A stretch of DNA of 64,000 nt from Guillardia theta CCMP2712 (taxonomy: Eukaryota > Protista > Cryptophyta). Location: the NCBI RefSeq assembly GCF_000315625.1, contig NW_005434670.1, positions 941,631 to 1,005,630 on the forward strand, read 5' to 3'. Each line of letters starts with the position of its first letter. Position 1 is the stretch's first letter. Of this stretch, positions 5,567-44,131 are shown piece by piece. The notes beneath the pieces are model-generated. The model did no database searches. It worked only from the letters and a program-made list of their open reading frames with translations, and was not told the origin of the DNA. Made by a program: the position numbers and the translations under genes.

Positions 5567-8500
5567 TCAAAGGTTGCAAGAATCCGGTAAAATACATATG
5601 TCCTGCGAAAAAGACGGATCACCGACCGGAAAGGCAGGCAGGGAGCAGCGGCAACCATGGGCGGCAGCGGCTCTGTCATCTCGAAGTATCCAAGGCGAGC
5701 CGTCAGCGTGAAGTTGAGGTCAGAGTTCATGTCGAGGATGCGGTCAGCTGGGATCTTGAAGGCGGACGCGATGCCGTAGAGCTGGCAGGCCGTCAGGACC
5801 CCAAGCGCAGCTCAGAAGTCACTCACTGTCTCTTGCCACTGGGGCCGGTACAAGTGCCCAACGTTGGCTGTGCGGGAGATCCCGTTCTCGCCTACCTGCT
5901 GGATCGCACTAGGGTCCCGAACATGAGGGTTTAGGCTCCAGATCTGCCAGAAAAGCATCAGAGAGTGAGGAGGCGATCTTCCAGGAACGAGGAGGAGAGC
6001 ACGAGGGTTGGTTACCTGCAGCCAGTTTGTCTTGAAGCGTGTTGCTATGCTCACGATGGAGTCGCTGGGTTGGAGGTACCAGATGCATCGCTGGACCTGG
6101 ACTTGGATGCAGTGGCTCTGACAGTGCGGCACCGGCATGTGGGAGGTTCCCGGACAAGGGCTTGACTCAACGCAGCTCTGGAGGCATACTTCACCGACCC
6201 ATCCTCCGTGGAAGTAGTTTGGAGTCCACAAGAGGAATCCTTGAGAGTCTGCGATGTTGGACAGCTGTAGGTTGACATCCTTGGTGAAGCTCCCGAGGGT
6301 TTGCATGTCGGCTCCGATGAGAATCAAACCTGTTCGGCTGGTCTTCCAGTTGTGATCACCCAAGATCTCCTCATCGGGAAACAAACTTGTTCCTCTAGCA
6401 GAAGGCCACGTCACTGGAAGGGAGCATGCAAGGGAAGGTACCTGATCTGAGAAATGCTGATGGATGGCACCGGCATGCTCGCATAGAACGGTGGATCGTT
6501 CCTTCGGACCGCGATGGGAACAGAGAGCTGCAAGGCAAACTCACACCAGGAGGAAAGAGAAGTCAACGTCTCTACCTGCTTGCCCATGGTAGCCTGATGG
6601 ATCACTTGTGGGCTTGTAACAGTAGGAGGAAGGGTGTAACGTACGTTCACAAGCACGCACTGCATGGCGCTCCCATAGTCTATCGGGCATCAAGTGGGGG
6701 TCACCTCATGACAAGAGGGCAAACTTGACTTACGGGTCGCCATCACGTTTGCGCAGACAACAGCAGTCTTGTTCTCCCCCACGCAAGGCCGCCAGAAGAT
6801 TTGCTTCGAGAGATTTCCGTACGGCTGCCTCAGGTAGTAGAGAGTAACGGAGAAGTTGGAGACGATGGCAGATATCTAGCACAAACGTGTCAGGGGTCGC
6901 TCAGAGCAGCTCATCTCCCGACTCACTGGTGTATATCCTGAGATGTTATTAGGAGTGATGTCAGTGATGGGCGGGCCCTGGCCCTTCCTGTACATAATGA
7001 ACACTGCGATGCCCGTCTTCGTGAAGTCAGCCTTCAGCAAGCTGTTTTGTTCAAGATGTATCCTTGGCTGAAGTATTGGTCCAGCCTCTGGGTATTGTTG
7101 ACAAGAACAATGTCGGTAATGGCCTGGAACGAGTCAGGGACCGAGTTCGACTCGAAGGTCTCGTAGTCTTGTGTGTGCAGCTTCTCAAAGATTACCGAGA
7201 CGTCCAAACTTCCTTGCACATCTTTCCCTTGTACCCAGTCATAAGTTTCGACCGGGGCTGACGAGATCCAGCCCATGGGGACTGGCTGAGACTGGCTGTG
7301 GTCTATCGCCTGGTAGGAGATGGGGAGGTAAAAGCTAGAGGGACGAGAACCAAAGAACTTGGTCTGATAGAAAACGTCGATGGCCGTGATGTAATCTCCT
7401 TCAGGACTGACAGAGTGCATGCTCAACGAGGGTATGACTGCACGGTCGCTGTGACTTTCAACGAAGTTGTAAGGCTCGTACCCTGTGTTGGTAGACTGCA
7501 ACGTGCTCTGCTGAGATTCCGTAGCGATCATGTACCGCAACGACAGCACCTCCATGTCGTCCGCCTTGTTCTCGTACGAAAACGTCTGGGCATAGCTAGA
7601 AACTGACATGGGGTAAAGAGGAAAGTTCTTCCCTATCGTTAGGTCGAGGGTGCAAAGATTGCCAGGTGCACAAGTGTAGGCCGAGTGCTTGCTGGGCTGC
7701 CTTGAAACGATCACGTCGGGTCCCTTCGCCATGAACATGCTCGTCGCTTCAGTCCAGGAGTTCCCGTAACTCACTCGAAAGGTGACGAAACCGAAGTCGC
7801 CGACCTCAAAGTTCTCAAAGGCAACTAGTGTACACTGAGAGTTGAGATGGTCTTGCCCCAACGAAACCGTTCCAGCGACGCGCGTCTCATTCTCGCTAGA
7901 CACTTGCCAGGTGTAGTTTGCAGGATAATTGTCGTCGGCAGTCCAAAAGATCGTCCCACTGCTTCTTGATACCAAGTTTCCTCGATTCAGACTGCAGACG
8001 GTGAGGGGGCTGGTGTTGCTGACGTTGATGTACAACACGGGAAAGATGACGATGCGAGGTGACCCGATGTAGTCCGAGAGATCGATGCTCGTGCTAACCT
8101 TGTAGCTGCTTGCTGTCCCGTTCTTGCAACAACCCTGCAGAGATGCAACCCATGGCGTCGTCCTACAGGGTTGGCCGACGTAGTGACCAGGGGGGTAGAA
8201 CACGTTGCAAGCTTTGAACTCGCCCGAGTACTTGTGCGAGATCCTCGTGACTCCTAGGAACCAGTCGTTCTCCACGTCCACTGACTCCACTTGTATCGTC
8301 ATCCCGTATTGCGAGGACCCGTCACCTGCCAAAGATTTCAACATCACCAACAATGTGCAGGTTTGCGACAAGTGAACACGACGAACCTGGATCGAAGAGC
8401 GAGGCGATGGCAACACTAGATGCCTGGACATCAGCTGTCGTGCCGGAAAGCAAGACAGCATCTCCAACAGACGGAGAGCTGCATTGGTTGCAGACTGGAT

Positions 8501-8708
8501 CGCAACGGCGACAAGGCCATTCGAAAGAACGTCGCCAAGCGCTCCATATCTCGAAGTCAACTGATGTTGTTCCTTGAGTTTGCCGCCATGAAATGGATGC
8601 TGCTATGAAGTTCCCTGAAGCAGCAACACGCACGTCAATGATGATGAGCAGCAGGCAGGCGAGCGAGCGCGGCAGGAGAAGGAAACGTCGCATCCTCGCT
8701 CCTGGCAT
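5567..8708 (-). CDS. Secreted multidomain protein A: signal peptide, Sib-like N-terminal region, MABP-like beta-prism, two C-terminal LysM domains
   Basis: Signal peptide RRFLLLPRSLACLLLIIIDVRVAA, then NFIAASISWRQ, PG|DG..VESVDVENDWF and PWVASLQGCC. The middle has YITAIDV/AITDIVL/PPITDI repeats. LysM1 is CIWYLQPSDSIVSIATRFKTNWLQ|IWSLNP; LysM2 ends DICILPDSCNL*. It is colinear with the paralog at 35967-38936. Confidence 0.8.
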
Positions 8709-25377: not shown

Positions 25378-28300
25378 TTATACGATAAGCTCCACTGCAT
25401 CACCGCTGTTATCCAGCTGCAGGCCAATGAACAATCTGCCGTAAGCCTCCTCAATCCGATCGATCGCCATCGCTGCTCCTCCTCGCATCTGCCAAGTAGC
25501 TCAGCTTCCTTCTCCTACCCGCTCGCATCCACCAGCAAGAACGTGACGACCGCAGCGTGCGGGTCAAGCTCAACCGACAAGATGTCTTCCTCTAGCACGT
25601 CTGCGAGGAGTCAGACTGAGCGCATGCTGCTGGCACAAGGTACCGCATCCTCTATTGGCGGACACCAGGACCCCATCCTTCCACATGCCGAAGGTCTGGT
25701 CCACGAGGTAGGATGAAAGCTTGAGGTGCAGCCAATCGCGATCGAGCAGGTTTGCTGCAAAAGAGGTGAGGGAGGGAGATGAAGGAGGAGGAAGAGGCGG
25801 AGAAGAAGAGAAGAGGAGGAGATGAAGGAGGGACAGGGAAGGAAGGGGGGCAAGGAACAGGAGCCGGGAGAGATGATAGGGGTGAGGAAGAGGAGAGATG
25901 ATAGGGAGGGGAGGGGGGTCAAGGAGGAGGGAGAGGCTGAGAGTATACATCGCCTCGAACGGAGAGCGTCGACAAACCCGAGGCGAAACCCTCCTGTCAG
26001 CCTGAGGATACGAAACTTGTTGTGCTTCAGCGTGACGTCACAAGTGCTGGAGCTGCTAACCTTGTACTCGACGGTCCTCCGGCTGTTGGAGATTTCGAGG
26101 AAGAAGTGCGTCAGGTCCTACCAGATACTTTAGGAGCTCCTTCTGTTCCTTGCGAACTCTCACTTGCACTCTTAGCCGATCGTCGCCCCCCTCCGGCGTT
26201 GCGCCGAAGATCATGTCGCACAGCGTGCAAACTTCTGTCTTGGATCGTGTTTGGATACAGATCTCCTGAGAAACATCAACGCCAAGTCATCTCGACCCTC
26301 CCACGTCGCTCCTCCAACACCTCCAATGGTCTTCTTGCTTCCAGCAGGTACCTCTCGAGCAGCTTCCGAGGGATGTAGTCATAGTCTTGCAGACAACCTT
26401 ATAAATGTCATCAGCTCCTTCTCCTCCCCCTCACGCCTCATCCTCCCCCTCACCCTCGAACCAGCTCGTCGGCACAGCCTCCGCCATCCTCTTGGCAACG
26501 GGCCTGGGAGAGTCGACAAACGTCTTGAACATGAACCCCGTCGCAAGCACTCTCCCTCCCCGCCTCTCCTCCAACCCTCCCATCCTCGGTCCGGCACCTC
26601 TGAACACGCTCCTCTCAACAGATCCGTTCATCACTCTCCCCCAACGAATCAAGTCGCTGCGGGTGATGTGTACAACCTTCAGGTGGGTCCGATCGAGCGA
26701 GACCGGGACGAGCCGGTCGGAGAAACTCCCACGGGCGTCATACCTCTCGTACTGCAACAGCATCTCCCCGTACCCTTGCACCTGGTACACTTCTCCAGGC
26801 ACTAGGCTCGTGCCCAAGAACTTTGACACCAGCTCGTACACCCTCCCTCCCTTGACCAGCTCGCTCTCCCTGATACTGACCTGCCCTCCATCCTGCGCCT
26901 GCAGCGGGAGGAAGGTTCGGTCCGGCGCGTGATCCCCATGCAGTGCCCGCCTGAGCTCCACCTGGTTGCAGGTGATGAGGGTGTGGATGGCGAGCAGAAG
27001 TCGCCCTGGTGAAGACTCGCCAGAGCTCTCGATCTCTTGTGCAATCGTGACCAGCAGGCTGCCCAACTCATCGTCCTCTCCAGCTGAACCCTGGTACTCT
27101 TCGTCCAGCTGGTCGTCTGCCGGCATGTCTGCACGGAGCTTGAGGATCTGAGCGACAAGATCCTCGCGCTCGAAGAATTGCTCTACTTCTACTCCTGCAG
27201 CGCGCAGCTCGAACTTCATCTCGGAGACTGACATAGTTGGCGGGTCACGGACCACCTGCAGCAACCTCTCAAGCAGGTCGTTCCTCTCGAACAACCCCTC
27301 GACGGAGATGTTGCGGTCCGCCAACATTTGCCTGCACAGAATGGTCAGGGTTCAGTCAGACTTCAACTTCCCAGCACTTGATCTCAACCACACTCAGCCT
27401 GTCGTAGGCTCGCCGTAATCTCCTCATCCCCTGGTCCGCCGGGTTCTGACTTGCGGCTCTCAGGAGATCGCGGATGGCTCTAAAAGCCGGAACAACTCTC
27501 TTGCTCTCCATCAGCAGCAGGTTGCGGAGGCTCTGCTTCAAAAGCCCCGTCCCTCTGTCCTCGCTGTCGTCCTGCGGCCCAGAATGCCTCCAGACAGTGA
27601 TCGCTCCGTCGCTCGCTCCTGCAGTCACGATCGTCCCTGGATGAGCAGAGAAGGAGATGGAGCATATCATGGATCCGTGCATGGATGAGGACACGAGAAT
27701 CGGTCCCTCGACATGATCGCAATACCTCAGGAAAGAGAGCTTGTCGACGACTTCTCGATCCTCTACCGACGTCAGGAGCCTGGAGAGCAGGTACATGGCA
27801 CTCTCCGCCTCCTCCTCGCTGTCTTTCTGCTGAACTGCCTGTAGGAACACGAGGCTGAACACCTGACGACTTGTGTGCGACCAGAGCTTGATCCTGCTCA
27901 TGACAGTCAGGCTGTTTAAGAGGAGAGGAGAGCTCCACCTGCGGGAGGAGATATGGAGCAACTTAGCAACGTCTTCTATCAGGCCCAACTCGAAATCGTT
28001 TGTCACTCGCTCGTATCCTATGTCCCTCTCGAACTCTCCGGTCATCACCAGCCAGACGCCGCGATGGTCAGCGACGGGAAACTCTGTGAGCATCAGCCTC
28101 CCTTCGGCATCCGCCATGGCCAGCTTTGTCCCTCTCATCGCCATGGTCTTGAACTTGACGCTGCTCGAGTTCTGTATCGAGCTAACGGCTGGTCCGATCG
28201 GCGAGGTGTGTGAGTGAAAGTCTGCCAGGTCGGAATCGGCAGCCCTCACGAGCTTCAGGGTCTTGACGTTCCAGAGGTTCACGTGCAACGAGCGATCGTG

Positions 28301-31300
28301 ACAGGCCTGTACGCTGACGTTGTCTTTCATCCAGTCGAGGCTGAGAACAGCTTCGTCCGCCCTCGATGAGTCCTGGCAGCTGCCCAGGTAGATGTGCGAA
28401 GGCTCGTTCAGTTTCAGCAGCTCTACCAGCAGCCTTGCTTCCTCGTTCCTCAGCCCGTCAAGGTTTCTCTGCAGCATCTCGAGCTGTTTGACGTTGGCCG
28501 CGTAAGTCTCTTCCAGCTCAGCGATCCTCTCACCGATCTGATCTGTCTTGCGCAACTTGAACGCCTCCAGCGCCTCCACTTGCTCGTCGAATCGTTTCCT
28601 CCGAGACATTGACACCTCACACCTGTGAACACAGATGTTGAGCTCTCCCTGAATCTTGTCCGTTTCTTTGGCGAGTTTCTTGGCTTCATCCGCCAACCCT
28701 CGAGCTTGGTTGATGTCGTCAGTCCCGATGCACTGACTCAATAGTCAGACACCATCTTCCGCATCGCCTTCACTTACCTTGAGACACTGAAACAACTGCA
28801 GCAAGAGGCGAGCGTCGACTTTACCGACAAGTTCTTCAGCCTTGAATTGAGCTAGCCTGTCAATGCACTCCAGCTTTCTGATCAAGAATTCATCGAGCTC
28901 CGCCTTCCACGCGCCTCTCACTGAAGCTTCGGGGAAACTTCTCGAGAAGTTCTCTTGGATGTGATACTTGATGTCTTCCAGCGACTCCGCGGCGTATTCA
29001 AGAGCCTCCTGCACCAACAGGATCGACTGCTCCCTCAGCTTAGGTCGGTTCGCGTACGCGTTCCTCAGAGGGGGCCGGTCGGTGAGCAGGGCATACTTCC
29101 TGAGCTGCTTGAGGTTAGACGACTTGGCGTGAGGTTGACAGCAAGTCTGGATGAGAGTAGCGAGCAAGACGCCGTCTGCAAAGTCCCAGTGAATGCAATC
29201 AAAGTCCAGCGAAAGCTTGAAGATCTCTTCTGCCCAGCGCTTGAAAGCCACGTGACCGTGGGTGTCGAAGATGTCGATCAACCCACTCGCAGTCCCCACC
29301 GCCAAGTGATTGCCGTCTGGAGAGTAGCGAACGCAAGTGAGAGATGTGAATCTTTGCAGGAAGTCGATCTGGTGGATGGGCTTCAGATCAGCATCGAGTA
29401 TCATACACCTCTTGTTGGCTGCTACTGCAATGTGACTGCCGTTGGGCGATATGTCAGCAGAGGTCACCGACGAGTGGAGGTGACAAAAGTCGACGCAGGT
29501 CAAACGTTGACTGTCCCACTTCTGTATGAACCCATGGTATGTCGCTGTGAGGAACCAGGGAGACGTCGGGTTGCAGCAGACGTTCACCACGTGCTGACGA
29601 GGCACTCCCTCGCAGACCTTGTAGCCCAGCTGGAACCGATCCCACGAGCTCATGACGAAGAGAGAGCCGCAGCTAGGCTGGATCAAGACGCTCTGGTCGA
29701 AGAAGTCAAACGAGCACCCGACGGCAGCATGCTTCTCTTCCGACGGTTGAGGGTCACCCAACGAGACCGAAAGACTCGCAACCTGCTCGATGAAAATGTT
29801 CGGCTCCTCGCTCAAGTGAACCTGCCGTCCGTCGCACACGAAGTAGAAGGTTTTAGACTTGATTGCTGGAGGCTTTCCATATGCGGATGTAGGAAATTGC
29901 AACTTGTGTCTGAGAGTATCCAGAGAGTCTTCGCCAGCCATTGCCACAACGTCCAAAGTGACAACATCGGAAACGATCGGAACGAAATATCGCATGACTT
30001 TCTTCGTCTGGAAATTCCAAATCTTTGACAAGCCGCTGCCCTCACAAGTCAGAATGCAAGAGTCTTGATCAAAGGTATTGTGGACGATGATTCTCGAGAT
30101 GCTGCAATGATGCATGTGATACACTCTCATCAATCGACCGAACTCAAACTCGTAGATGTTCCCTAGTTCACATCCGAACACCACTCGCTGGTAACCGACG
30201 TATGCAGCAGCGGTCATGGAGGGGACGGAAAGGTGGTCCGCTGCTTCCCCGGCCCTCACTGAGAAGTTCCATGACAAGTCTCCGCCCGTCCGCGTCATCT
30301 TGACAAAGTCTGGAAGTCCAATGCCGAAAGTGACGAACTCAGGTGACGAGACTCGTGCGAAGGGATCAAAAACCAAGTGATCGAGGAACTCAGTGAAGGT
30401 GAACCTTCCTATCACTGCCTCGCGCTCATAACTGAGAATGAAGACGAAGCTCTTCTTGCCGCGACCCAGCAAAGCTACATCACAACTCTTCGGAAGGAAC
30501 TGGATCTCCTGTATCTTGACCTGAAACAAGGAATCAATCGCAACCCTTTTGTGCACTTCCAGGCTTATGACGTCCCAGATGATTATGGTTCTTTTGGTAC
30601 GAACGCTCAAAGTGCACACTCTCTGTCTTTGGACATCCAGGTCAACCGATACAATCTCGTCGTTACCGTGTTCGAGAAAGTGTCGCTGACTGTTGTTCCT
30701 CTTGTCAGACAGAACTGCAGTCGACCGATGGATCGAGAGGTATTCCCCAGTGCACACCACAAAAATATTTGTTGAATGATGACTGCGCCTCCCATGCAAT
30801 GAGTGGACGCGGAGAGATTGGCCTCGATAGACGAACATCTCAGAGTCCAACTCGTCTTCACGGAAAGCTTCAAAGTCGTCGACCTTGAGTCGCTGCTTGT
30901 CGTAGCTGACGGTAGTTTGCTTCTCCTCCTTGTGGGAACTAGCAGGCAACTCTGATATCTTGCGGTGGCTCTGGATGGTCTTCTGCACAAGCTTCCATTG
31001 TACAACACTCCCTTCCCCGTGAGAGCAAGTCAAGAGATGGTTGCCGACGAACGAGAGAGCGCTGACTTGAGCTGTGTGACATGTGTACTTCATGCTGTGA
31101 GGATCACGAGACGTGCAAGGGAACCTACAAACAATTACGTCTGATCCAGAGCTGTAGCTCAGAGTGTCTTTGAAGAGCATACTTCTGTCTACTTGCAATG
31201 TTGTCCTGTCGTTTGACGTATCTTCATCGTTGACAATCTCCAGAACAGATTGCTCCATCGTACAAGAGTGCGAGGCCCACTTGACATCTAGAGGGATTTC

Positions 31301-34300
31301 TCCTCCTCTCCGACTTGTGCAGGAAACAGGTGAGTGGTTGTTGTAATGTATTCCCCAGAACAAGAGCTCTTTGCTCGCAGAGTTTGCCCTGACATAATTC
31401 GAGTCGAGCGACCAGTCCAAGTACAAGATGGATGCTGTCGATCCTGACATTTTCATGAACTTTTCAGCAAGATTGTGAGACCTGCGAATATGGACAAAGT
31501 GATCTCCAGTCGACAATGCCAAGAGCTGGTCGTTTGGAGCAAATTTCACACCGATCACGCTCTTGCCACATTTCAAAGCTGCTGAGAGGATTTGGAAAGT
31601 CAGTTTCCCTCCTTTCAAGAGCTTCTGAGAAAATTCAGCCTCCAGATCTACCTCGACCATTTTAGATTCCATCTTGAAATTGACATGAGTGATTTGGCGA
31701 CTCTCAATTTTCTTGGACAGCTGCTTCTCAAATAGTAGTTCTTTCTTCTGACCTTCCGAAATCAGACCATTCTTCTTCAGGATGTCCATTTCCGCAATGA
31801 ACAATCGTCTTCGCTTTATGGACGACTTGTTGTCATTGTGTAAAATCCCCTTTCGAATTCTCTTCGTCCTGTGTGTATGGAGCTCAGCTTCAAGGTCCAA
31901 GATTTCATGTTGTAGTTTTTCCTGCTGCAACACAATTGTTTTATCAGCAACCTTTCGATCTTTACGAGTCCGTTTCTCATGGTCTAAGAGCTTTTTGAGT
32001 TCAATCTGTCTGGAATTGATGTCATTCAGCAACTTCTTCTCATATTCTGTCCAAGTAACTCCCTCTAGAGACAGTCGCATCCCTCCGTTAAATATTGAGG
32101 TGATCGAAACGTCATTTTCTGAAGTGACATGTTGAATGTCAGTAAATGTTTCGACGTCGATAACGACAATGTTTCCATCCTTCAAGCCTATCACACAACT
32201 GAGCCCATCGTACGAGAAGCACATGCTCAAGATCGACGATTTGTACTTATTTCTTCTCATGCACTTTCTGTCTGCAAGATTCCACAGCGCAGCGACTCCG
32301 TCATCAGAGCCACTGACAAACTTGGTGTCATCCATTGGAGAAATGCTCAATGCTAGGACGCTTTCCTTTGAAGGTGAGTCCATCACCAAGATCAGCTCCC
32401 TTGTTCTATCTCGACACCTGTAAAGAATGTTTTGGTCCGTTCCAATCAGAACCGTACTTGCAACCTTGTCAGACTGATTCCTGGTTTGGTCCATGAAATG
32501 AAATCCAGTAGACTTCATGACTCCTGGAAAGTTTGAGATCGCAACTCCATATTGCTTCACTTGAGACTGATACAGACGAGGTATGTTTTGCTCATGGACT
32601 TTGGTAACAGAGAAGGATACTCCTTTGCCCTCTACTTCATGTCGTTTCCACATGCTGAAAACAATCGAACCGTCTGATCCTGAAGACATCAGGTAATGCA
32701 CGTCCGACATCGCACTATCCCAAGTCAGAGACATATCAATAACACTATCCTTATGCATTGCACAGATATCCACTATTTGACATCCTTTCCAAACGTATAT
32801 ATTCCCGTCCTCCATTCCTGTCAAAAATTCATCTACCCCACAAACAGCCACACAGAAAATAGTCTGCATTTTGATCTGACCATCCAATGGAAAATCATCA
32901 TTCCACTTCCAATAGCTCTTTCCATTAACTACTTCTGAATATCTTTGCGTACAAACCAAAGTGTTTTTCTTGTAACATTCATCAATGTGAAATGCACGAG
33001 CGCTGGCATCTCGAAGCTTCATCCGAATGGTTTCTTGCTGATGAATGTCTTCATAGCTATGCAGGATTCGATGAATCGCATTCATGGACCACCGAAAATA
33101 CGGATTTTGACTGAAACCTCTTCTTGGAAACGATTTCTCTTGGAGTTTGCGTTTGAATTGATCACAAAGGAATGAAAAGGCTTGTTCCAAACTTTTGAAT
33201 GTATCCAACGTTTTCTGCCACTGTAGCAGATCAGCATGAATGACAAAGTCTTTGATGTAAGAAGTCACTTTCAAGGCCAGAATGTAGGCTTGCACTGCAG
33301 AACGGAAATCATTGCCTTGGCTTGCGTCATCAGCCAAAGTAACAAGATCGCACAATAGTTCATATGCGGGCTGAATATCAACGTCTGTGTACTCATACTC
33401 TTTGACTGAATGAACATGTCGAAGAATTTCCAACTCCAAGTCAATGACTTCCATGAACAGGTCGCTATCTGCTGTACAAAAATTGGTCCACTGTTCAAGT
33501 CTGTTATGCCCACAGACAAAGATCAAGTCTTCATGTGGATGCACCGCTATTGAACTGATCTTGTTGACACCCAAGCACGCAAAGGTTTTCAGACCAATCG
33601 GTTCCTGCTCAAGATCAAATATGACTAGGTATTGAAACCCTGCTATCAAAAACACAGCGATCATGTCAAGTCCATTCCTTCCGAATTCCAGGGCGAGAAC
33701 AACAACTGGTTGCCCTGCATCTATTTTCCGGTCGATAGGGCTCCATTCTTTTACACGTATGAAGCGACGTGAGTATTGGTCATCATGAAGCAAGGTCCAG
33801 ATGATGATGGAAGGCTTCTCGTCATCTACGTTCAGCTCATGCCCCGTTGCGATGATATTTCCAGAAGGATGCAACGCAGCACAGGTAATTCTCTGATTTG
33901 TTTCCTGCAGAACCAACTGGCGATTTGTAATGTAATCAAGGACGACTCCTGTCGCACCGACAAAATAGAACACACAATTTTCCTTTGACAAGATGAAAAT
34001 TCGGCATGAAAACTTACTTCCGCCGAAGCCATACACGTGCTCCATCTCCAACTCTCGACGCACACTGAGGTCTTGCGCTTCACCTTCCAGCTCCATGTCG
34101 GTCTGGCTGATGTTTTTGCGCCAGGGCTCGAGGATCTCAAAGGTGTCAGACGCAGAGTCATGAGCTGAAGGCTCTTCCTCCCCCGGACGCTGGTGTGCCA
34201 CAAGAGTTTGATGCATTCTTCGTAGATGAGGATGGGCGTCTTCACGACGTCTCGACTCCTCTCCTCGACAAGAACACTTCCACAGGTTCATGAATACCCG

Positions 34301-35227
34301 AAGGATGAAATGTTTCAAGCTGTGCTCTTTCTCTTGTAGGTTGCTGTGGACAGAATGCAAGAAGTTGAGGTCATCTTTGTTCTTCCGATATTCTTCCTTC
34401 AGTTTCCTGGGTGCAAACAGCAATGTCACACAGAGGGCAAAGCTGCGAAAGCAAATCAAAACCTGAGCTCGTCAGCCTTCTGATAGAATTCGAGCTGTTT
34501 GCTGTTGTGGAGAGAGAGCTCCAGGTCTTGATGGTTGTACGCGTCACGCAGCTCTGAAGTAGCTCTTTCGCGCTTGCTCGTGTAGTCCTGCAGGAAATGC
34601 GCATGATCTTGCGAAGAATCGTGAAGCTTCTTCTTCCACCATTGGATGGATGCTTTCGTCTTCCAGTTGAACCCGGAGACTGTTGCATGTCCTGCCGAGG
34701 AGGAGGAGAAATCGTAGTCCTCATGAAGCGATGTCAGCTGGTCAATGCTATAAGTCTTTTCTTTGATCTCCTTGGTTAGCCTTAAGATGCAGACCCTACA
34801 CTTGTCATCTATCAGCTGCTGGATGCCTTGGCGATTTCGTATAACTTCGACAATAGATCCTAACAACGCATTCCTGTCTTTGTCGCTTGCAATTTCTTCA
34901 ACATTCGGTACGTAACGCACTTGAGAAGCAGACGTGATTTCTTTGAGTTCTTGCTCTCTGTCATGTAGATTTGACGTAGGTATCACCTCTCTTGCTGTGT
35001 GAGGAAGTTCGAGCTCCAGGATCTGTTCTTGGCTCCTCTTCAGTTTGACAACATCGTCGGAGAGGTACCATGACAGTGTCGTCAAGTTGCACAGTTCTGA
35101 TATTGTGGAGTTTGACATGTCAGAGTGAAGCAAGTTTGGATCTTTTAGGTGTGAGTGACAGGTTCCTAGTACATTCACCTTCTCCTCACCTTCCCGCCAC
35201 CTTCATCCCTCGATTATGCGAAACCAT
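25378..35227 (-). CDS. Giant EML-like WD40 protein (HELP-like motif, multiple beta-propellers, coiled coils) with C-terminal tandem SAP-like motifs
   Basis: ORFs 34456-35178, 28745-34459, 27356-28741 and 26431-27327 are joined by short GT-AG introns (ELR|KLKEE, CLK|CIG, EIK|QML). EML hallmarks: LEMEHVYGF..YFVGATGVV, LDWSLDSNYVRANS..ELLFW, KWASHSCT, RFPC and Q.HFLEH..EI. Stop at 25378; the start is approximate. Confidence 0.8.
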
Positions 35228-35966: not shown

Positions 35967-38936
35967 ATGGCGATTGTAGTGCTAACGGCGGTCCTTTCCC
36001 TGATTGCGGCGTATGCAAACGCTCAGCAGACATGCCCGGGGGTGGAAGCGATTTACACTGGAAGTCCTGTCGGAGCTTTTATTTCAGCATCGATCTCGTG
36101 GAAGCAGTTGTATGGCAATACGGTGTCCTTTGAGATTCAAGGGATGTGGAGACGAAAGCATCAGTGGCCTTGCTCCTTGAAGACAGGTTTCAGCGGTCCA
36201 GACGGATATCCTGGACTGGGGGACCAACTTAAAGTGATGGGGTTGTCGGCTATCGATGACACCTCACCGGATCCAAGGATCATCACACCTGGCAAGATTG
36301 GAGCTTTCTTCAGCACAGGTACGCCACTATCGTCCTGTCTTTGGTCACTGACTGTTGCGATGCAGGAGATGGGAAGGATTATGAACTGCCGTTGAAGGTT
36401 GTCTCCTATTCTATTGAAGAAGACTGGATTTCCACCATTTCTGTTTTGGTGCACACTTATCCCGCTCCTTTCCAAACATTGCAAGAGATTTACCCTGCAA
36501 GTTATGTTGCGGTTTCAGGCCAACAAGACTTGACTCAGCCATATACAATCATTCCATGGAGAGCCACTCTTTCAGGATGCTGTCGTAGGTGGGCTGCTCA
36601 GACTACAAGCTTGAACTTTGCTGTTGGAGCAGAGGTAGATCTGAGTAATCAAATTTCTTCAGCCAGAATTGTCAGCATGCCTTACTGGACTATCACCCCG
36701 ACCAAGAGGACGATCTCGGTCTGTGCTTTGTCTTTGACGGGGCAAATGGGTATGTTCCAGAAGAATGGAGGTACTTTGAACTGGCCTTTGGATGATAACA
36801 TACCAGCGAGCTTTGAGTGGAGTATTCTGGGTTCGAGCCTTCCAGCCAAAATTGTGAGCGGGGCACAAACATCATGTGTAGTGATCGAGGTTGATCCTTT
36901 GGGAGTCAGTGCAGGAGAATTCATCCGCCTGCGGAATAAATTAGGCAATGCAGTATCGGAAGCTGAAATGGCAATAGCGGTAAAGGCGAACACTGAAGTT
37001 CCGGCAACGCCAGTCGCGACATCCACGAATCCTGTTCTTGACACAAGGATGTCCTGTCCTGCAAGTTCAAGTTGCATGAAGATTCTCAGCCTTGGCAAGT
37101 ACTACGCCTGGTCTAAGATGAAATGGACAGCAGGAACTTGGACAAGCCCGCTCGAACTGAGGTATACAGTAGCTACTGCCTCCTCTCAAAGCCCTCTGGT
37201 TTCGACGTCGCAGTCTAGTGTTGTCTACAGCACCACCAAGGCCGGCGAGGACCATGCCTACCTCCCGCGGGGTTCCTGGCTGTCGCCTTACAACGATGCA
37301 GGGGAGTACGTGACAGACTTAGCGGTGACGTACACCTCTTCGACTACCAATGCGGACCCTTCTGCAGACCTTCCTATCTCTTATGGACAACGAGACTACT
37401 ACGACCAGGGAAATCCTCTCCCAAACGTCTGGAATTCTGTTCCAAACAGCAATTTCAATGACGGGTTTGGTGGAGCACACGTCAACCTGTTTATCCAGAG
37501 AATGACGTCTCAGGCTGCAGCAGGGATCGTAGACCCTAAAATCATGGCAGCTATAACTTCAATCAAGCTCGCCAACGAATCTCAAGTAGCCGACTACTTG
37601 TACGAAGGATACATCAAGCTTGAGAGAAATCTGCTGCAGCAGAGCAACCGGGGGAGCATCTTCATCATGTACAAAAAGGGGTCTGGTCCTCCTGTCCTAG
37701 ATATCTCGACATCGCCGGTCGTTGGGTACGTGAATGTGAACGCTTCGACGACAGTGGACGGAAGAAATCAAACAACAATCAACCTGTATGTAAAGTATAG
37801 TGACGACAAAAGCATCCAGAGGGCACTTATGTGGAGACCATGCACTTCGCAAAACGAGCCCGTCGTGATCTGTATCGCGACAGTTATCTCTGCAACAGGA
37901 TTCGGAGATCAGCAATTCTGTGTTTATCTTGATGTCGTTCCCCTTCGAGCTCCAGCCATCACTCCAAACCTACCAGGGCCATATTCAGCTATCATGGGCG
38001 ACCTGACAGAAATCACCTTGGCCATCGTTCGCAGGGATGAACCTATCTCCGGCCTCGACCAGGACCCAATTATCCAGTTCAGCTCAACGCATGGTTCGTT
38101 GCCTGAATTCAGGATGCAAGAAGCTCTCACCAGCGCCACCCCCGCTGTTCTACAACTTGTAATTATCATCTCAGTGACGTGTCGAAAAGTTCTGATGCCA
38201 TCGCATTGCAGGTGGGTGCGGATAAGAAGACCCCGGGCCTTTCTCAAGTGCTCGGCAGTGGCGACAGCGTTGTGTACGACTCGTATGTCTCCTACTTCCA
38301 GTGGATCCCCTCGCCCTATCAAGGGGGTTGGAAGGGTTCGATCTGTGTGGAAGTGTGTCTCGAAGCCGGAAGCTGCCCGGCGACCCCCAACGTCTTCAGT
38401 CCCGTCTGCTCGACATTCTGCCTGGACATACTCGTGGAGAGATGTAAATGGGCACTGCAGTCGGAGGATTCCTTCGCCGAGATCGCTCCTCGCTTCCGGA
38501 CCAACTGGCTGCAGGTCCTTCTGCCTCTTCGTACCCCGCGTTCCTCTGACTCGCAGCAGCTCTGGTACCTCAACCCCTTCTTCCAGCACCCCGACTACAG
38601 CGGAGTTTCGACACAAGCAGGGGCCGTGAAGGTGATCAACGTTGGTAGAGTGTACAGGGTGCAGATGGGAGATACGGTATGGTGTCTTGTCGCCTTCTCC
38701 TCGTTGCTCCGCTGACTCCACACCTCGCAGGTCAATTCCATCCTCGAGCGCTTCGGCGCTTCGCTGCAGAGCTTGATAAACTTGAATGCTGACGTCACCA
38801 ACTCATCCATCCTTGCCAAGAAGGGAGAGTTGGCGCTGCAGGTGAAGCAAGAGCGCCAGCCCTCTTGTCTTGCCCGCTGACTTTGTTGAAGGAGTTGTGT
38901 ATCATCCCTGATTCTTGCGCCGTGCTGGCGAGCTAG
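35967..38936 (+). CDS. Secreted multidomain protein B: signal peptide, Sib-like N-terminal region, MABP-like beta-prism, two C-terminal LysM domains
   Basis: Signal peptide MAIVVLTAVLSLIAAYANA, then AFISASISWKQ, TG|DG..VVSYSIEEDW and PWRATLSGCCR. The middle has YVTDLAV/AITSIKL/PPVLDI repeats. LysM1 is CKWALQSEDSFAEIAPRFRTNWLQ|LWYLNP; LysM2 is YRVQMGDT|VNSILERFGASLQSLINLN...ELCIIPDSC. Confidence 0.85.
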
Positions 38937-39432
38937 AGCGAGTCGTTTCCCTTGTCCCCATCACCGTGTAAATAGGTTGAATTTATTGTATGGCTAGTGC
39001 ATGCAAGAGCCAATGAAAGAACAGCGTCTTGTTGCGATTGATAGGGTGAGCAGCTCTTTTACCGCCTCCTCCTCTCAATCTTCTCCCCGCGCCACCATGA
39101 CATCTCTCTCTGCTCTACGTCGTGACTTCATTTTTGCACTGCACCTACTAAAAAAGCGCAAGTCACTCTGTCGGTTTCTTTTTTACTTTTTTTTAAGTTT
39201 TTCTCATTTTTTTTTAGTTGAACACTTTTACCACAATCGTGCTGTCGGGGAGGGTGCGAAATGCTGGGGCAAGGCGAAGAGGGCAGAGGGAGAGGGGAGG
39301 GAGAGGAGGGCGAGAGCAGAGGAAGAGGAACAGGGTAAGGAGGAGGAGGAGGAGAAGGAGGAGGAGGAGGAGGAGGAGGAGGGGAGGGATACGACAACAA
39401 GCATGAAGGTTCCTTGAGAATGAAGTGAAGTC

Positions 39433-44131
<4,699 letters not shown>

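Follow-up and report, generated by a model that had tools for sequence, protein, structure and literature searches.

A predicted secreted protein of Guillardia theta with a diverged SIBA-E_N domain, an MABP-type beta-prism and two LysM domains: a candidate recognition or adhesion lectin

What might a cryptophyte alga do with a secreted protein that seems to carry, one behind the other, a head of the Sib type, a beta-prism and a pair of LysM domains? The question is posed by a gene of Guillardia theta CCMP2712, here called copy B, which lies at 35967-38936 on the forward strand of a 64,000-nucleotide (nt) stretch of contig NW_005434670.1 (positions 941,631 to 1,005,630; this whole stretch is the window, and its numbering is used throughout). 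An earlier note made from the letters alone had described the product as secreted, Sib-like, MABP-like and equipped with two LysM motifs, and had proposed it as a candidate for recognising microbes or prey. From sequence comparison and predicted models the architecture can now be put forward with high confidence as a signal peptide, a diverged SIBA-E_N domain, a spacer, an MABP-type prism, a cysteine-rich beta-sandwich and two LysM domains, and all the motifs that the note quoted are present in the copy B translation. Profile or fold searches back each of the three domain calls, which puts them well beyond chance motif matches. The parts run as follows (aa, amino acids; ORF, open reading frame).

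35967-38936, forward strand: copy B coding region, with ATG at 35967 and TAG ending at 38936, and an 80.7% identical transcript ORF (P0001 on contig L009).
35967-36318, 36366-38158, 38212-38514, 38557 (or 38560)-38676, 38731-38841 and 38892-38936, forward strand: copy B exons.
36319-36365, 38159-38211, 38515-38556 (or -38559), 38677-38730 and 38842-38891, forward strand: copy B introns, all GT-AG.
35967-36023, forward strand: predicted signal peptide, aa 1-19, MAIVVLTAVLSLIAAYANA and then QQ; the hydropathy maximum, kept in P0001.
36066-36694, forward strand: diverged SIBA-E_N-type domain, aa 34-227, split by intron 1, assigned by hhalign to same-genome domains that pass PF24907.
36695-37294, forward strand: beta-rich spacer, aa 228-427, conserved among paralogues (alignment A1).
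37295-37813, forward strand: predicted MABP-type type-I beta-prism, aa 428-600, with three internal repeats.
37814-38442, forward strand: predicted beta-sandwich and cysteine-rich region, aa 601-792, split by intron 2, with 8 cysteines.
38443-38637, forward strand: LysM 1, aa 793-843, split by intron 3; positions 73-118 of the tail alignment A5 align to the Ecp6, YaaH/SleL and SafA LysM.
38644-38903, forward strand: LysM 2, aa 846-897, split by introns 4 and 5 and followed by a C..P.SC tail; a Pfam LysM in P0001.

Spliced in this way copy B reads from ATG to TAG through six exons as 2724 nt and 907 aa with no internal stops, and its five introns, each GT-AG, are 42-54 nt long. A word-indexed protein search with exon 2 as query found P0001, a protein of 905 aa with 80% identity to copy B over that exon, the coding sequence of which is a single unbroken ORF (164-2881) on a 2980-nt Joint Genome Institute (JGI) contig, L009, and as the ORF is uninterrupted there L009 is taken to be a transcript. 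The two proteins are 80.7% identical in global alignment, colinear across five of five exon junctions and 75-90% identical in each domain, with no frame breaks, and the spliced model that the earlier note had called for could be built with all its junctions matched by P0001. At the exon 3/4 junction, where the site is a CAGCAG tandem acceptor, P0001 is without one glutamine present in the copy B model, and because of this exon 4 probably starts at 38560 via the second AG. Intron 3 (38515-38559; 42 nt) is in frame and stop-free, and its retention would add 14 residues inside LysM 1. Four same-species runs hold the copy B region, all of them genomic: their contigs continue across the introns without joints. 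An annotation artefact, whereby two adjacent genes or a pseudogene are read as one, could draw upon this stop-free intron and upon there being no RNA reads of the same species counted in support of copy B (three reads in a 6% sample). However the unbroken 905-aa transcript ORF spans all exons, the paralogues keep the part order and the domain by domain identity to P0001 comes with no frame breaks, which leaves an artefact very improbable. The earlier note had been prepared to give up its reading if the LysM exons belonged to a separate gene; this is excluded for the orthologue P0001, where one unbroken transcript ORF holds all the parts, and appears very unlikely in copy B.

Entry to the secretory pathway is suggested by the hydropathy of the protein. 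In a Kyte-Doolittle scan with 19-residue windows the top score (2.07) is that of residues 1-19, the best internal window reaches 1.28, and across the whole protein the only windows above 1.3 are those starting at residues 1-3; cleavage after aa 19 would follow from an A-x-A pattern. The scan finds no C-terminal hydrophobic segment and the translation holds no NP.Y motif, and so the signal peptide and the lack of a C-terminal transmembrane (TM) helix were both read correctly in the note. Because its sole strong hydrophobic stretch is the signal peptide and no NP.Y motif is found, the copy B product is predicted to be a soluble secretory-pathway protein of about 95 kDa. Its sequence includes 19 cysteines and four N-x-S/T sites, and ends 5 residues past the last conserved cysteine. 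A glycosylphosphatidylinositol (GPI) anchor was set aside, the C-terminus having no hydrophobic tail, and so was plastid targeting as unlikely, in that the mature N-terminus begins QQTC with no phenylalanine-type transit motif of the kind used in cryptophyte targeting. Pfam searches of the copy B exon pieces taken singly gave nothing even at E<=1, the introns splitting the domains, and the domain analysis therefore went through P0001 and through profiles.

For the N-terminal domain the relevant Pfam family is PF24907 (SIBA-E_N), with a cut-off of 28.1 bits. On the copy B subfamily it scores 12-22 bits, below the cut-off and at the same place each time, the GDG...EEDW...HTY block (P0001-3 at E 0.07-0.16, a C160 paralogue at 19.6 bits, P0008 and P0024 at 19-22 bits), and a six-frame scan of the whole 87.1-Mb, 669-contig assembly places eight loci over the cut-off, at up to 60.6 bits, and four loci of the copy B subfamily just under it. 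The motifs in the translation are FISASISW...VSFE...WRR, GDGKDYELPLKVVSYSIEEDW...HTY, WRATLSGCC and VDLSNQISSARIVSMP. Alignments were made of the copy B-subfamily N-termini (A3) and of six above-cut-off loci (A2), five of which were rescanned and pass PF24907 at 31.7-58 bits; hhalign of A3 against A2 gives a probability of 99.8% and E 1e-27 over 150 columns with the listed motifs all in register, and the control of A3 against the prism alignment (A4) gives 0.2%. Remoter relatives with a copy B-like middle and tail pass the SIBA-E_N cut-off (P0028 at 36.3, P0037 at 44.6 and P0038 at 37.8 bits). Judged by these profile comparisons the N-terminal domain of copy B is a diverged SIBA-E_N domain.

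The Sib proteins sit in the membrane in type I orientation and combine a VWA domain with a TM helix rich in glycine and with talin-binding NPxY motifs (PMC9197732). Were copy B a true Sib-type, integrin-beta-like TM receptor for adhesion or phagocytosis, the SIBA-E_N domain would be what the two have in common, but Pfam finds no VWA domain at E<=1 in the copy B exons or in P0001-3, there is no TM helix and no NPxY, and the P0001 transcript ends at the same place. Such a receptor is already refuted for the present gene model and is given next to no credence, and identification as a Sib orthologue was rejected for want of the same three features. With these absent, the Sib-type receptor function is not transferable to the copy B protein. 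The Sib resemblance claimed in the note therefore survives as a SIBA-E_N domain seen by profile-profile comparison, one that misses the Pfam cut-off, and does not extend to the VWA domain, the TM helix or the NPxY tail.

The spacer that follows may hold a module of the Ig-like kind, comparable to the second domain of Sib proteins. A language-model search of the ESM Atlas with residues 22-340 gave PKD/He_PIG leads at 0.83 only, which is below the useful range and not evidence, and aa 372-427 are modelled with low confidence, at a predicted local distance difference test score (pLDDT) of about 47-58.

A model of 37127-37819 (aa 372-602), built with 33 sequences, has a mean pLDDT of 80.6, with values above 90 across most of residues 428-600, and its fold matches are these (score, residues matched and distance).

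8b6v, Mpf2Ba1: 12.4, 132, 3.6 A.
2qp2, Plu-MACPF: 10.5, 124, 3.6 A.
3tow, MVB12B MABP: 9.9, 128 of 152, 3.6 A.
6sb1, perforin-2 P2: 5.0, 131, 5.2 A.
6u23, MPEG-1: 4.0, 121, 5.2 A.

Foldseek on the same model returned an identical top four with noise beneath. Profile A4 matches the Mpf2Ba1 prism at E 5.7e-14 with two overlapping repeat registers aligned, and thus shows the internal repeat of the prism; the three-fold repeat of the note (starting in the translation at YVTDLAVTY, AAITSIKLAN..EGY and PPVLDISTSPVVGY, and followed further on by two LysM-like stretches) coincides with the predicted first strands DLAVTYTS, ITSIKLAN and VLDIS. ESM Atlas neighbours of the prism include PF10240-annotated clusters (MACPF+MABP, 'MABP domain-containing protein', DENND4B), and the Atlas feature search of the prism region gave no usable match. 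PF10240 (MABP) itself has no match at E<=1 in the copy B exon or in P0001-3. By its definition (PMC2881412; de Souza and Aravind 2010) the MABP family comprises type-I beta-prisms built from three homologous subdomains, the Plu-MACPF/plu1415 prism being a founding member (PMC2881412), and aa 428-600 are modelled as just such a prism. The middle domain of copy B is accordingly supported by its modelled fold as an MABP-type beta-prism, with the C-terminal prisms of bacterial MACPF proteins as its nearest relatives in sequence and fold, and the MABP-like call of the note holds.

Its membrane-binding corollary fares less well. The MVB12B MABP binds acidic lipids, and the note had carried this over; the copy B prism has no cysteines, a net charge of -5, no PF10240 match and bacterial MACPF prisms as nearest relatives, and therefore acidic-lipid binding of the MVB12B type is unsupported for it and not to be assumed; the negative charge speaks against a plain electrostatic attraction to such lipids. 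In MACPF proteins and in MVB12 the MABP prism has been proposed, or shown, to bind a membrane or another target (PMC2881412). One could suppose that copy B serves to target a lytic or antimicrobial system, with the LysM pair on a wall, the prism on a membrane and the effector encoded separately, and the best prism matches (Mpf2Ba1 and Plu-MACPF, with perforin-2 also matched) speak for this. Against it, neither copy B nor the scanned family members have a MACPF or other effector domain, none is encoded nearby, and fold similarity does not carry function over, so that a lytic role seems improbable.

Two other proteins bear on the prism repeat. P0078 (Fundulus heteroclitus XP_035984499.1), a fish protein, has at least five stretches matched by the copy B-family prism repeat unit and P0099 has an astacin protease domain and then four stretches matching this repeat, with no Pfam MABP domain at E<=0.01 in either. 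PF10240 appears to miss many MABP-like repeats.

In the C-terminal cassette the last ~170 residues are conserved in about 60 representatives by an iterative search within the collected proteins. The last ~70 residues of aa 601-792 (W.PSPYQGGW...C...C...RC) go with the LysM pair as one conserved unit, and the alignment of 37 family tails (A5) has the consensus W.P...QGG..G..C...C...V.RC.W.VQ.EDSL.EIA.RF.TNWLQLW.LNP...HPD...INVG..Y.....DT....A.RFG.....L..LN.DL......CVIPNSC. LysM 1 is 83% and LysM 2 80.6% identical between copy B and P0001. At 847-881 of P0001, which is LysM 2, PF01476 (LysM) reaches 27.9 bits where 20.9 is the cut-off, and P0024 has two PF01476 stretches at 36.8 bits. The top match of A5 in the PDB is Ecp6 (4b8v; E 2.3e-8), with both LysM units aligned, and this is Ecp6 crystallised with an N-acetylglucosamine (GlcNAc) tetramer; other matches are LytE, the Thermus NlpC/P60 LysM pair, YaaH/SleL, chitinase LysM domains and MltD, while SafA matches the first unit only and A5 positions 119-165 (LysM 2) match many LysM chains. 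An AlphaFold2 (AF2) model of P0001:690-905 (pLDDT 79.9) has a beta-sandwich, its strands E23-E106 ahead of the LysM domains, and then two beta-alpha-alpha-beta units, LysM 1 at E104-106, H113-120, H124-129 and E151-153 and LysM 2 from E156-159 through E203-206. The Foldseek list for this model is nearly all LysM proteins with tandem-LysM structures on top, single LysM chains superposing at 2.0-2.6 A with TMt 0.7-0.8. Profile, Pfam and predicted fold thus bear out the two LysM motifs that the note picked out, and by these measures both domains are real.

Copy B does not stand alone. Profile A1, searched against 1.84 billion representatives, collected 161 proteins at E<=1e-3, and by sequence the Guillardia theta genome has at least seven paralogues, copy B among them; exon 2 relatives are found at C4:874711 and C4:939077 on the contig of the window (the latter about 0.9 kb short of it), on C37, as copy A within the window at 5576-8615 on the reverse strand, and on C160 as two near-identical inverted copies. 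The order of the parts is the same in all paralogues, and in six PF24907-passing loci of the genome a LysM match lies 1.1-3.3 kb downstream on the same strand. Across the family the SIBA-E_N head and the beta-sandwich/2xLysM tail stay constant and the middle module varies, being an MABP-like prism, a ConA-like Laminin_G_3 domain (P0041, P0053, P0067 and P0072, by Pfam) or folate-receptor-like (PF03024, Folate_rec, at 32-34 bits in P0034 and P0037, with the Sib-type head region ahead of it and the prism/LysM tail behind). Members with an organism name come from Hanusia phi, Hemiselmis andersenii (UniRef A0A6U4NQ56, 'Uncharacterized protein'), Rhodomonas salina and Proteomonas sulcata, all cryptophytes, the rest being environmental contigs, and database labels are hypothetical or uncharacterised. 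The search for like architectures elsewhere that the note had suggested therefore led to several cryptophyte genera. The note's remark that the architecture is undescribed stands in so far as no paper describing it or the family was found in the searchable literature; it is not peculiar to copy B, which belongs to one subfamily of a larger cryptophyte family.

Three side observations concern these relatives. The C160 pair, L004 (C160:111031-112380, forward) and L006 (C160:115861-117207, reverse), face each other head to head across about 3.5 kb and are a recent inverted duplication, with a SIBA-E_N domain uninterrupted by an intron. For the PF03024 domain, P0034 and P0037 are an unusual context. 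Four members (P0156, P0188, P0189 and P0216; MGB1594515.1, MGB1594731.1, MGB1598015.1 and MGB1606369.1) belong to one metagenome-assembled genome (MAG) labelled 'Promethearchaeia archaeon', with ACPIOQ_ tags, and this bin very likely holds mis-binned cryptophyte DNA.

What then would the LysM tail bind, and whose polymer would it be? LysM domains are established as a family that binds GlcNAc polymers. Exon-by-exon searches of the genome found no match to Chitin_synth_2 (PF03142) and, in a search run without a positive control, none to Chitin_synth_1 (PF01644), which argues weakly against a self-made ligand. The question matters for the main rival view, in which copy B is a self-surface or matrix protein, its LysM tail anchored to a GlcNAc glycan of the alga's own periplast or matrix, in the manner of the LysM anchors of bacterial wall enzymes, and its head and middle projecting outward in a structural or adhesive role; recognising microbes would then not be its primary task. 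LysM domains at the C-terminal end behind an N-terminal part that varies are the layout classically seen in wall-anchored proteins, and the LysM matches do include LytE, NlpC/P60 and MltD; the paralogous set is large with constant ends, Sib proteins are substrate-adhesion molecules (PMC9197732), and a FUT8-like glycosyltransferase fragment 3.5 kb downstream is a weak hint in the same direction. Set against this, neither Pfam family of chitin synthases gave a match, with the caveats of the search as given. Nor do we know of a GlcNAc polymer in cryptophyte periplasts, and a self-surface role is possible, if less likely than not.

The reading that we prefer, tentatively and at somewhat less than an even chance, is that copy B is a secreted pattern-recognition or adhesion lectin which tethers or agglutinates microbes or particles. 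The protein probably binds glycans, of microbes or of a cell surface. The LysM pair would bind a GlcNAc-containing polymer, and with no chitin synthase detected in the genome this ligand is more likely to come from outside, as bacterial peptidoglycan or as chitin from another organism, than to be made by the alga itself. The prism, together with the Sib-type head, would offer a second binding surface, be it on the alga's own surface or on the target membrane, and the protein would in this way tether, agglutinate, bridge or mark microbes or particles, with the middle domains swapped among paralogues serving to diversify the recognition targets. A wider proposal, that the family is a cryptophyte secreted recognition repertoire built upon one scaffold of Sib-type head, exchangeable middle and LysM tail and acting as opsonins or prey-capture factors, we regard as unlikely, if worth stating.

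Several points weigh against the lectin reading. In a 6% sample of a single raw RNA run carrying the same-species label there are three reads, at 95-99% identity; two further runs gave no copy B reads, a result that does not show copy B to be silent. The LysM fold and Pfam support was taken from the 80%-identical P0001, the C-terminus of copy B being split by introns. The conserved cysteines of eukaryotic MABP domains (PMC2881412) are absent from the acidic copy B prism. The exon-by-exon synthase searches do not prove that a self-made GlcNAc polymer is absent. As the evidence is computational throughout, the functional claim is offered as a hypothesis.

The neighbouring genes give no functional context for copy B. 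Upstream, at 26431-35178 on the reverse strand, is a WD40 protein of very great length, unrelated to copy B, that has beta-propellers of the EML type (a 1904-aa open frame plus flanking ORFs). Downstream by 3.5 kb, at 42482-43339 on the forward strand, is the ORF with a near-threshold match to FUT8_N_cat, an alpha-1,6-fucosyltransferase catalytic domain (26.7 bits against 27.6). Downstream of copy B, long purine-rich GAG/GGA runs at 39270-39400 and 39950-40160 read as poly-E, poly-G or poly-D depending on frame, and are low-complexity sequence that is intergenic or inside a neighbouring gene.

Cryptophytes are ecologically important algae that are often called mixotrophs. SIBA-E_N, MABP and LysM are each known; what is undescribed in the searchable literature is a secreted protein that unites all three, together with the family that shares this make-up. 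The diverged head would extend the range of SIBA-E_N beyond Dictyostelium-type receptors and the prism would add a eukaryotic, extracellular MABP prism without MACPF attachment, both of which would help to classify domains and to date the modules of adhesion and phagocytosis. If the LysM tail does bind bacterial walls, the family becomes a testable candidate for how cryptophytes recognise prey, symbionts and pathogens. If the recognition repertoire were true, bacterivory or microbiome control by a mixotroph would be tied to an adhesion module predating the Amoebozoa-cryptophyte split, and a secondary alga would have a soluble innate-recognition system.

Compared with Dictyostelium discoideum SibA-E, copy B has a homologous N-terminal domain, with the motif order F..G.ISW, V.FE, WRR, GDG, EEDW, HTY, GCCR and VDLS..SPR..P, and in both this domain opens the mature, extracellular protein. 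In contrast to the Sib proteins it is predicted to be soluble, without a VWA domain, TM helix or NPxY/talin-binding tail, its N-terminal domain is too diverged for the PF24907 cut-off, and its MABP prism and LysM domains are not described in Sib proteins (PMC9197732). From the known MABP prisms (Mpf2Ba1, 8b6u/8b6v; Plu-MACPF, 2qp2; MVB12B, 3tow; perforin-2/MPEG1 P2, 6sb1) that of copy B differs in being cysteine-free, net acidic, extracellular and unmatched by PF10240, and in sitting mid-protein together with LysM rather than following MACPF or belonging to a trafficking protein of the cytosol. In Ecp6, the plant CEBiP/CERK1/NFP ectodomains and the bacterial NlpC/P60 and SleL pairs the setting of the LysM domains is different, the copy B pair being a tail behind ~790 unrelated residues, and unlike the multi-LysM receptors and enzymes copy B lacks both a kinase and a hydrolase domain and is anchored neither by GPI nor by a TM helix. 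With multi-LysM proteins it shares a predicted tandem of beta-alpha-alpha-beta LysM units in a secreted protein, with Ecp6 (4b8v) as best profile match, and conserved cysteines before, between and after the LysM domains.

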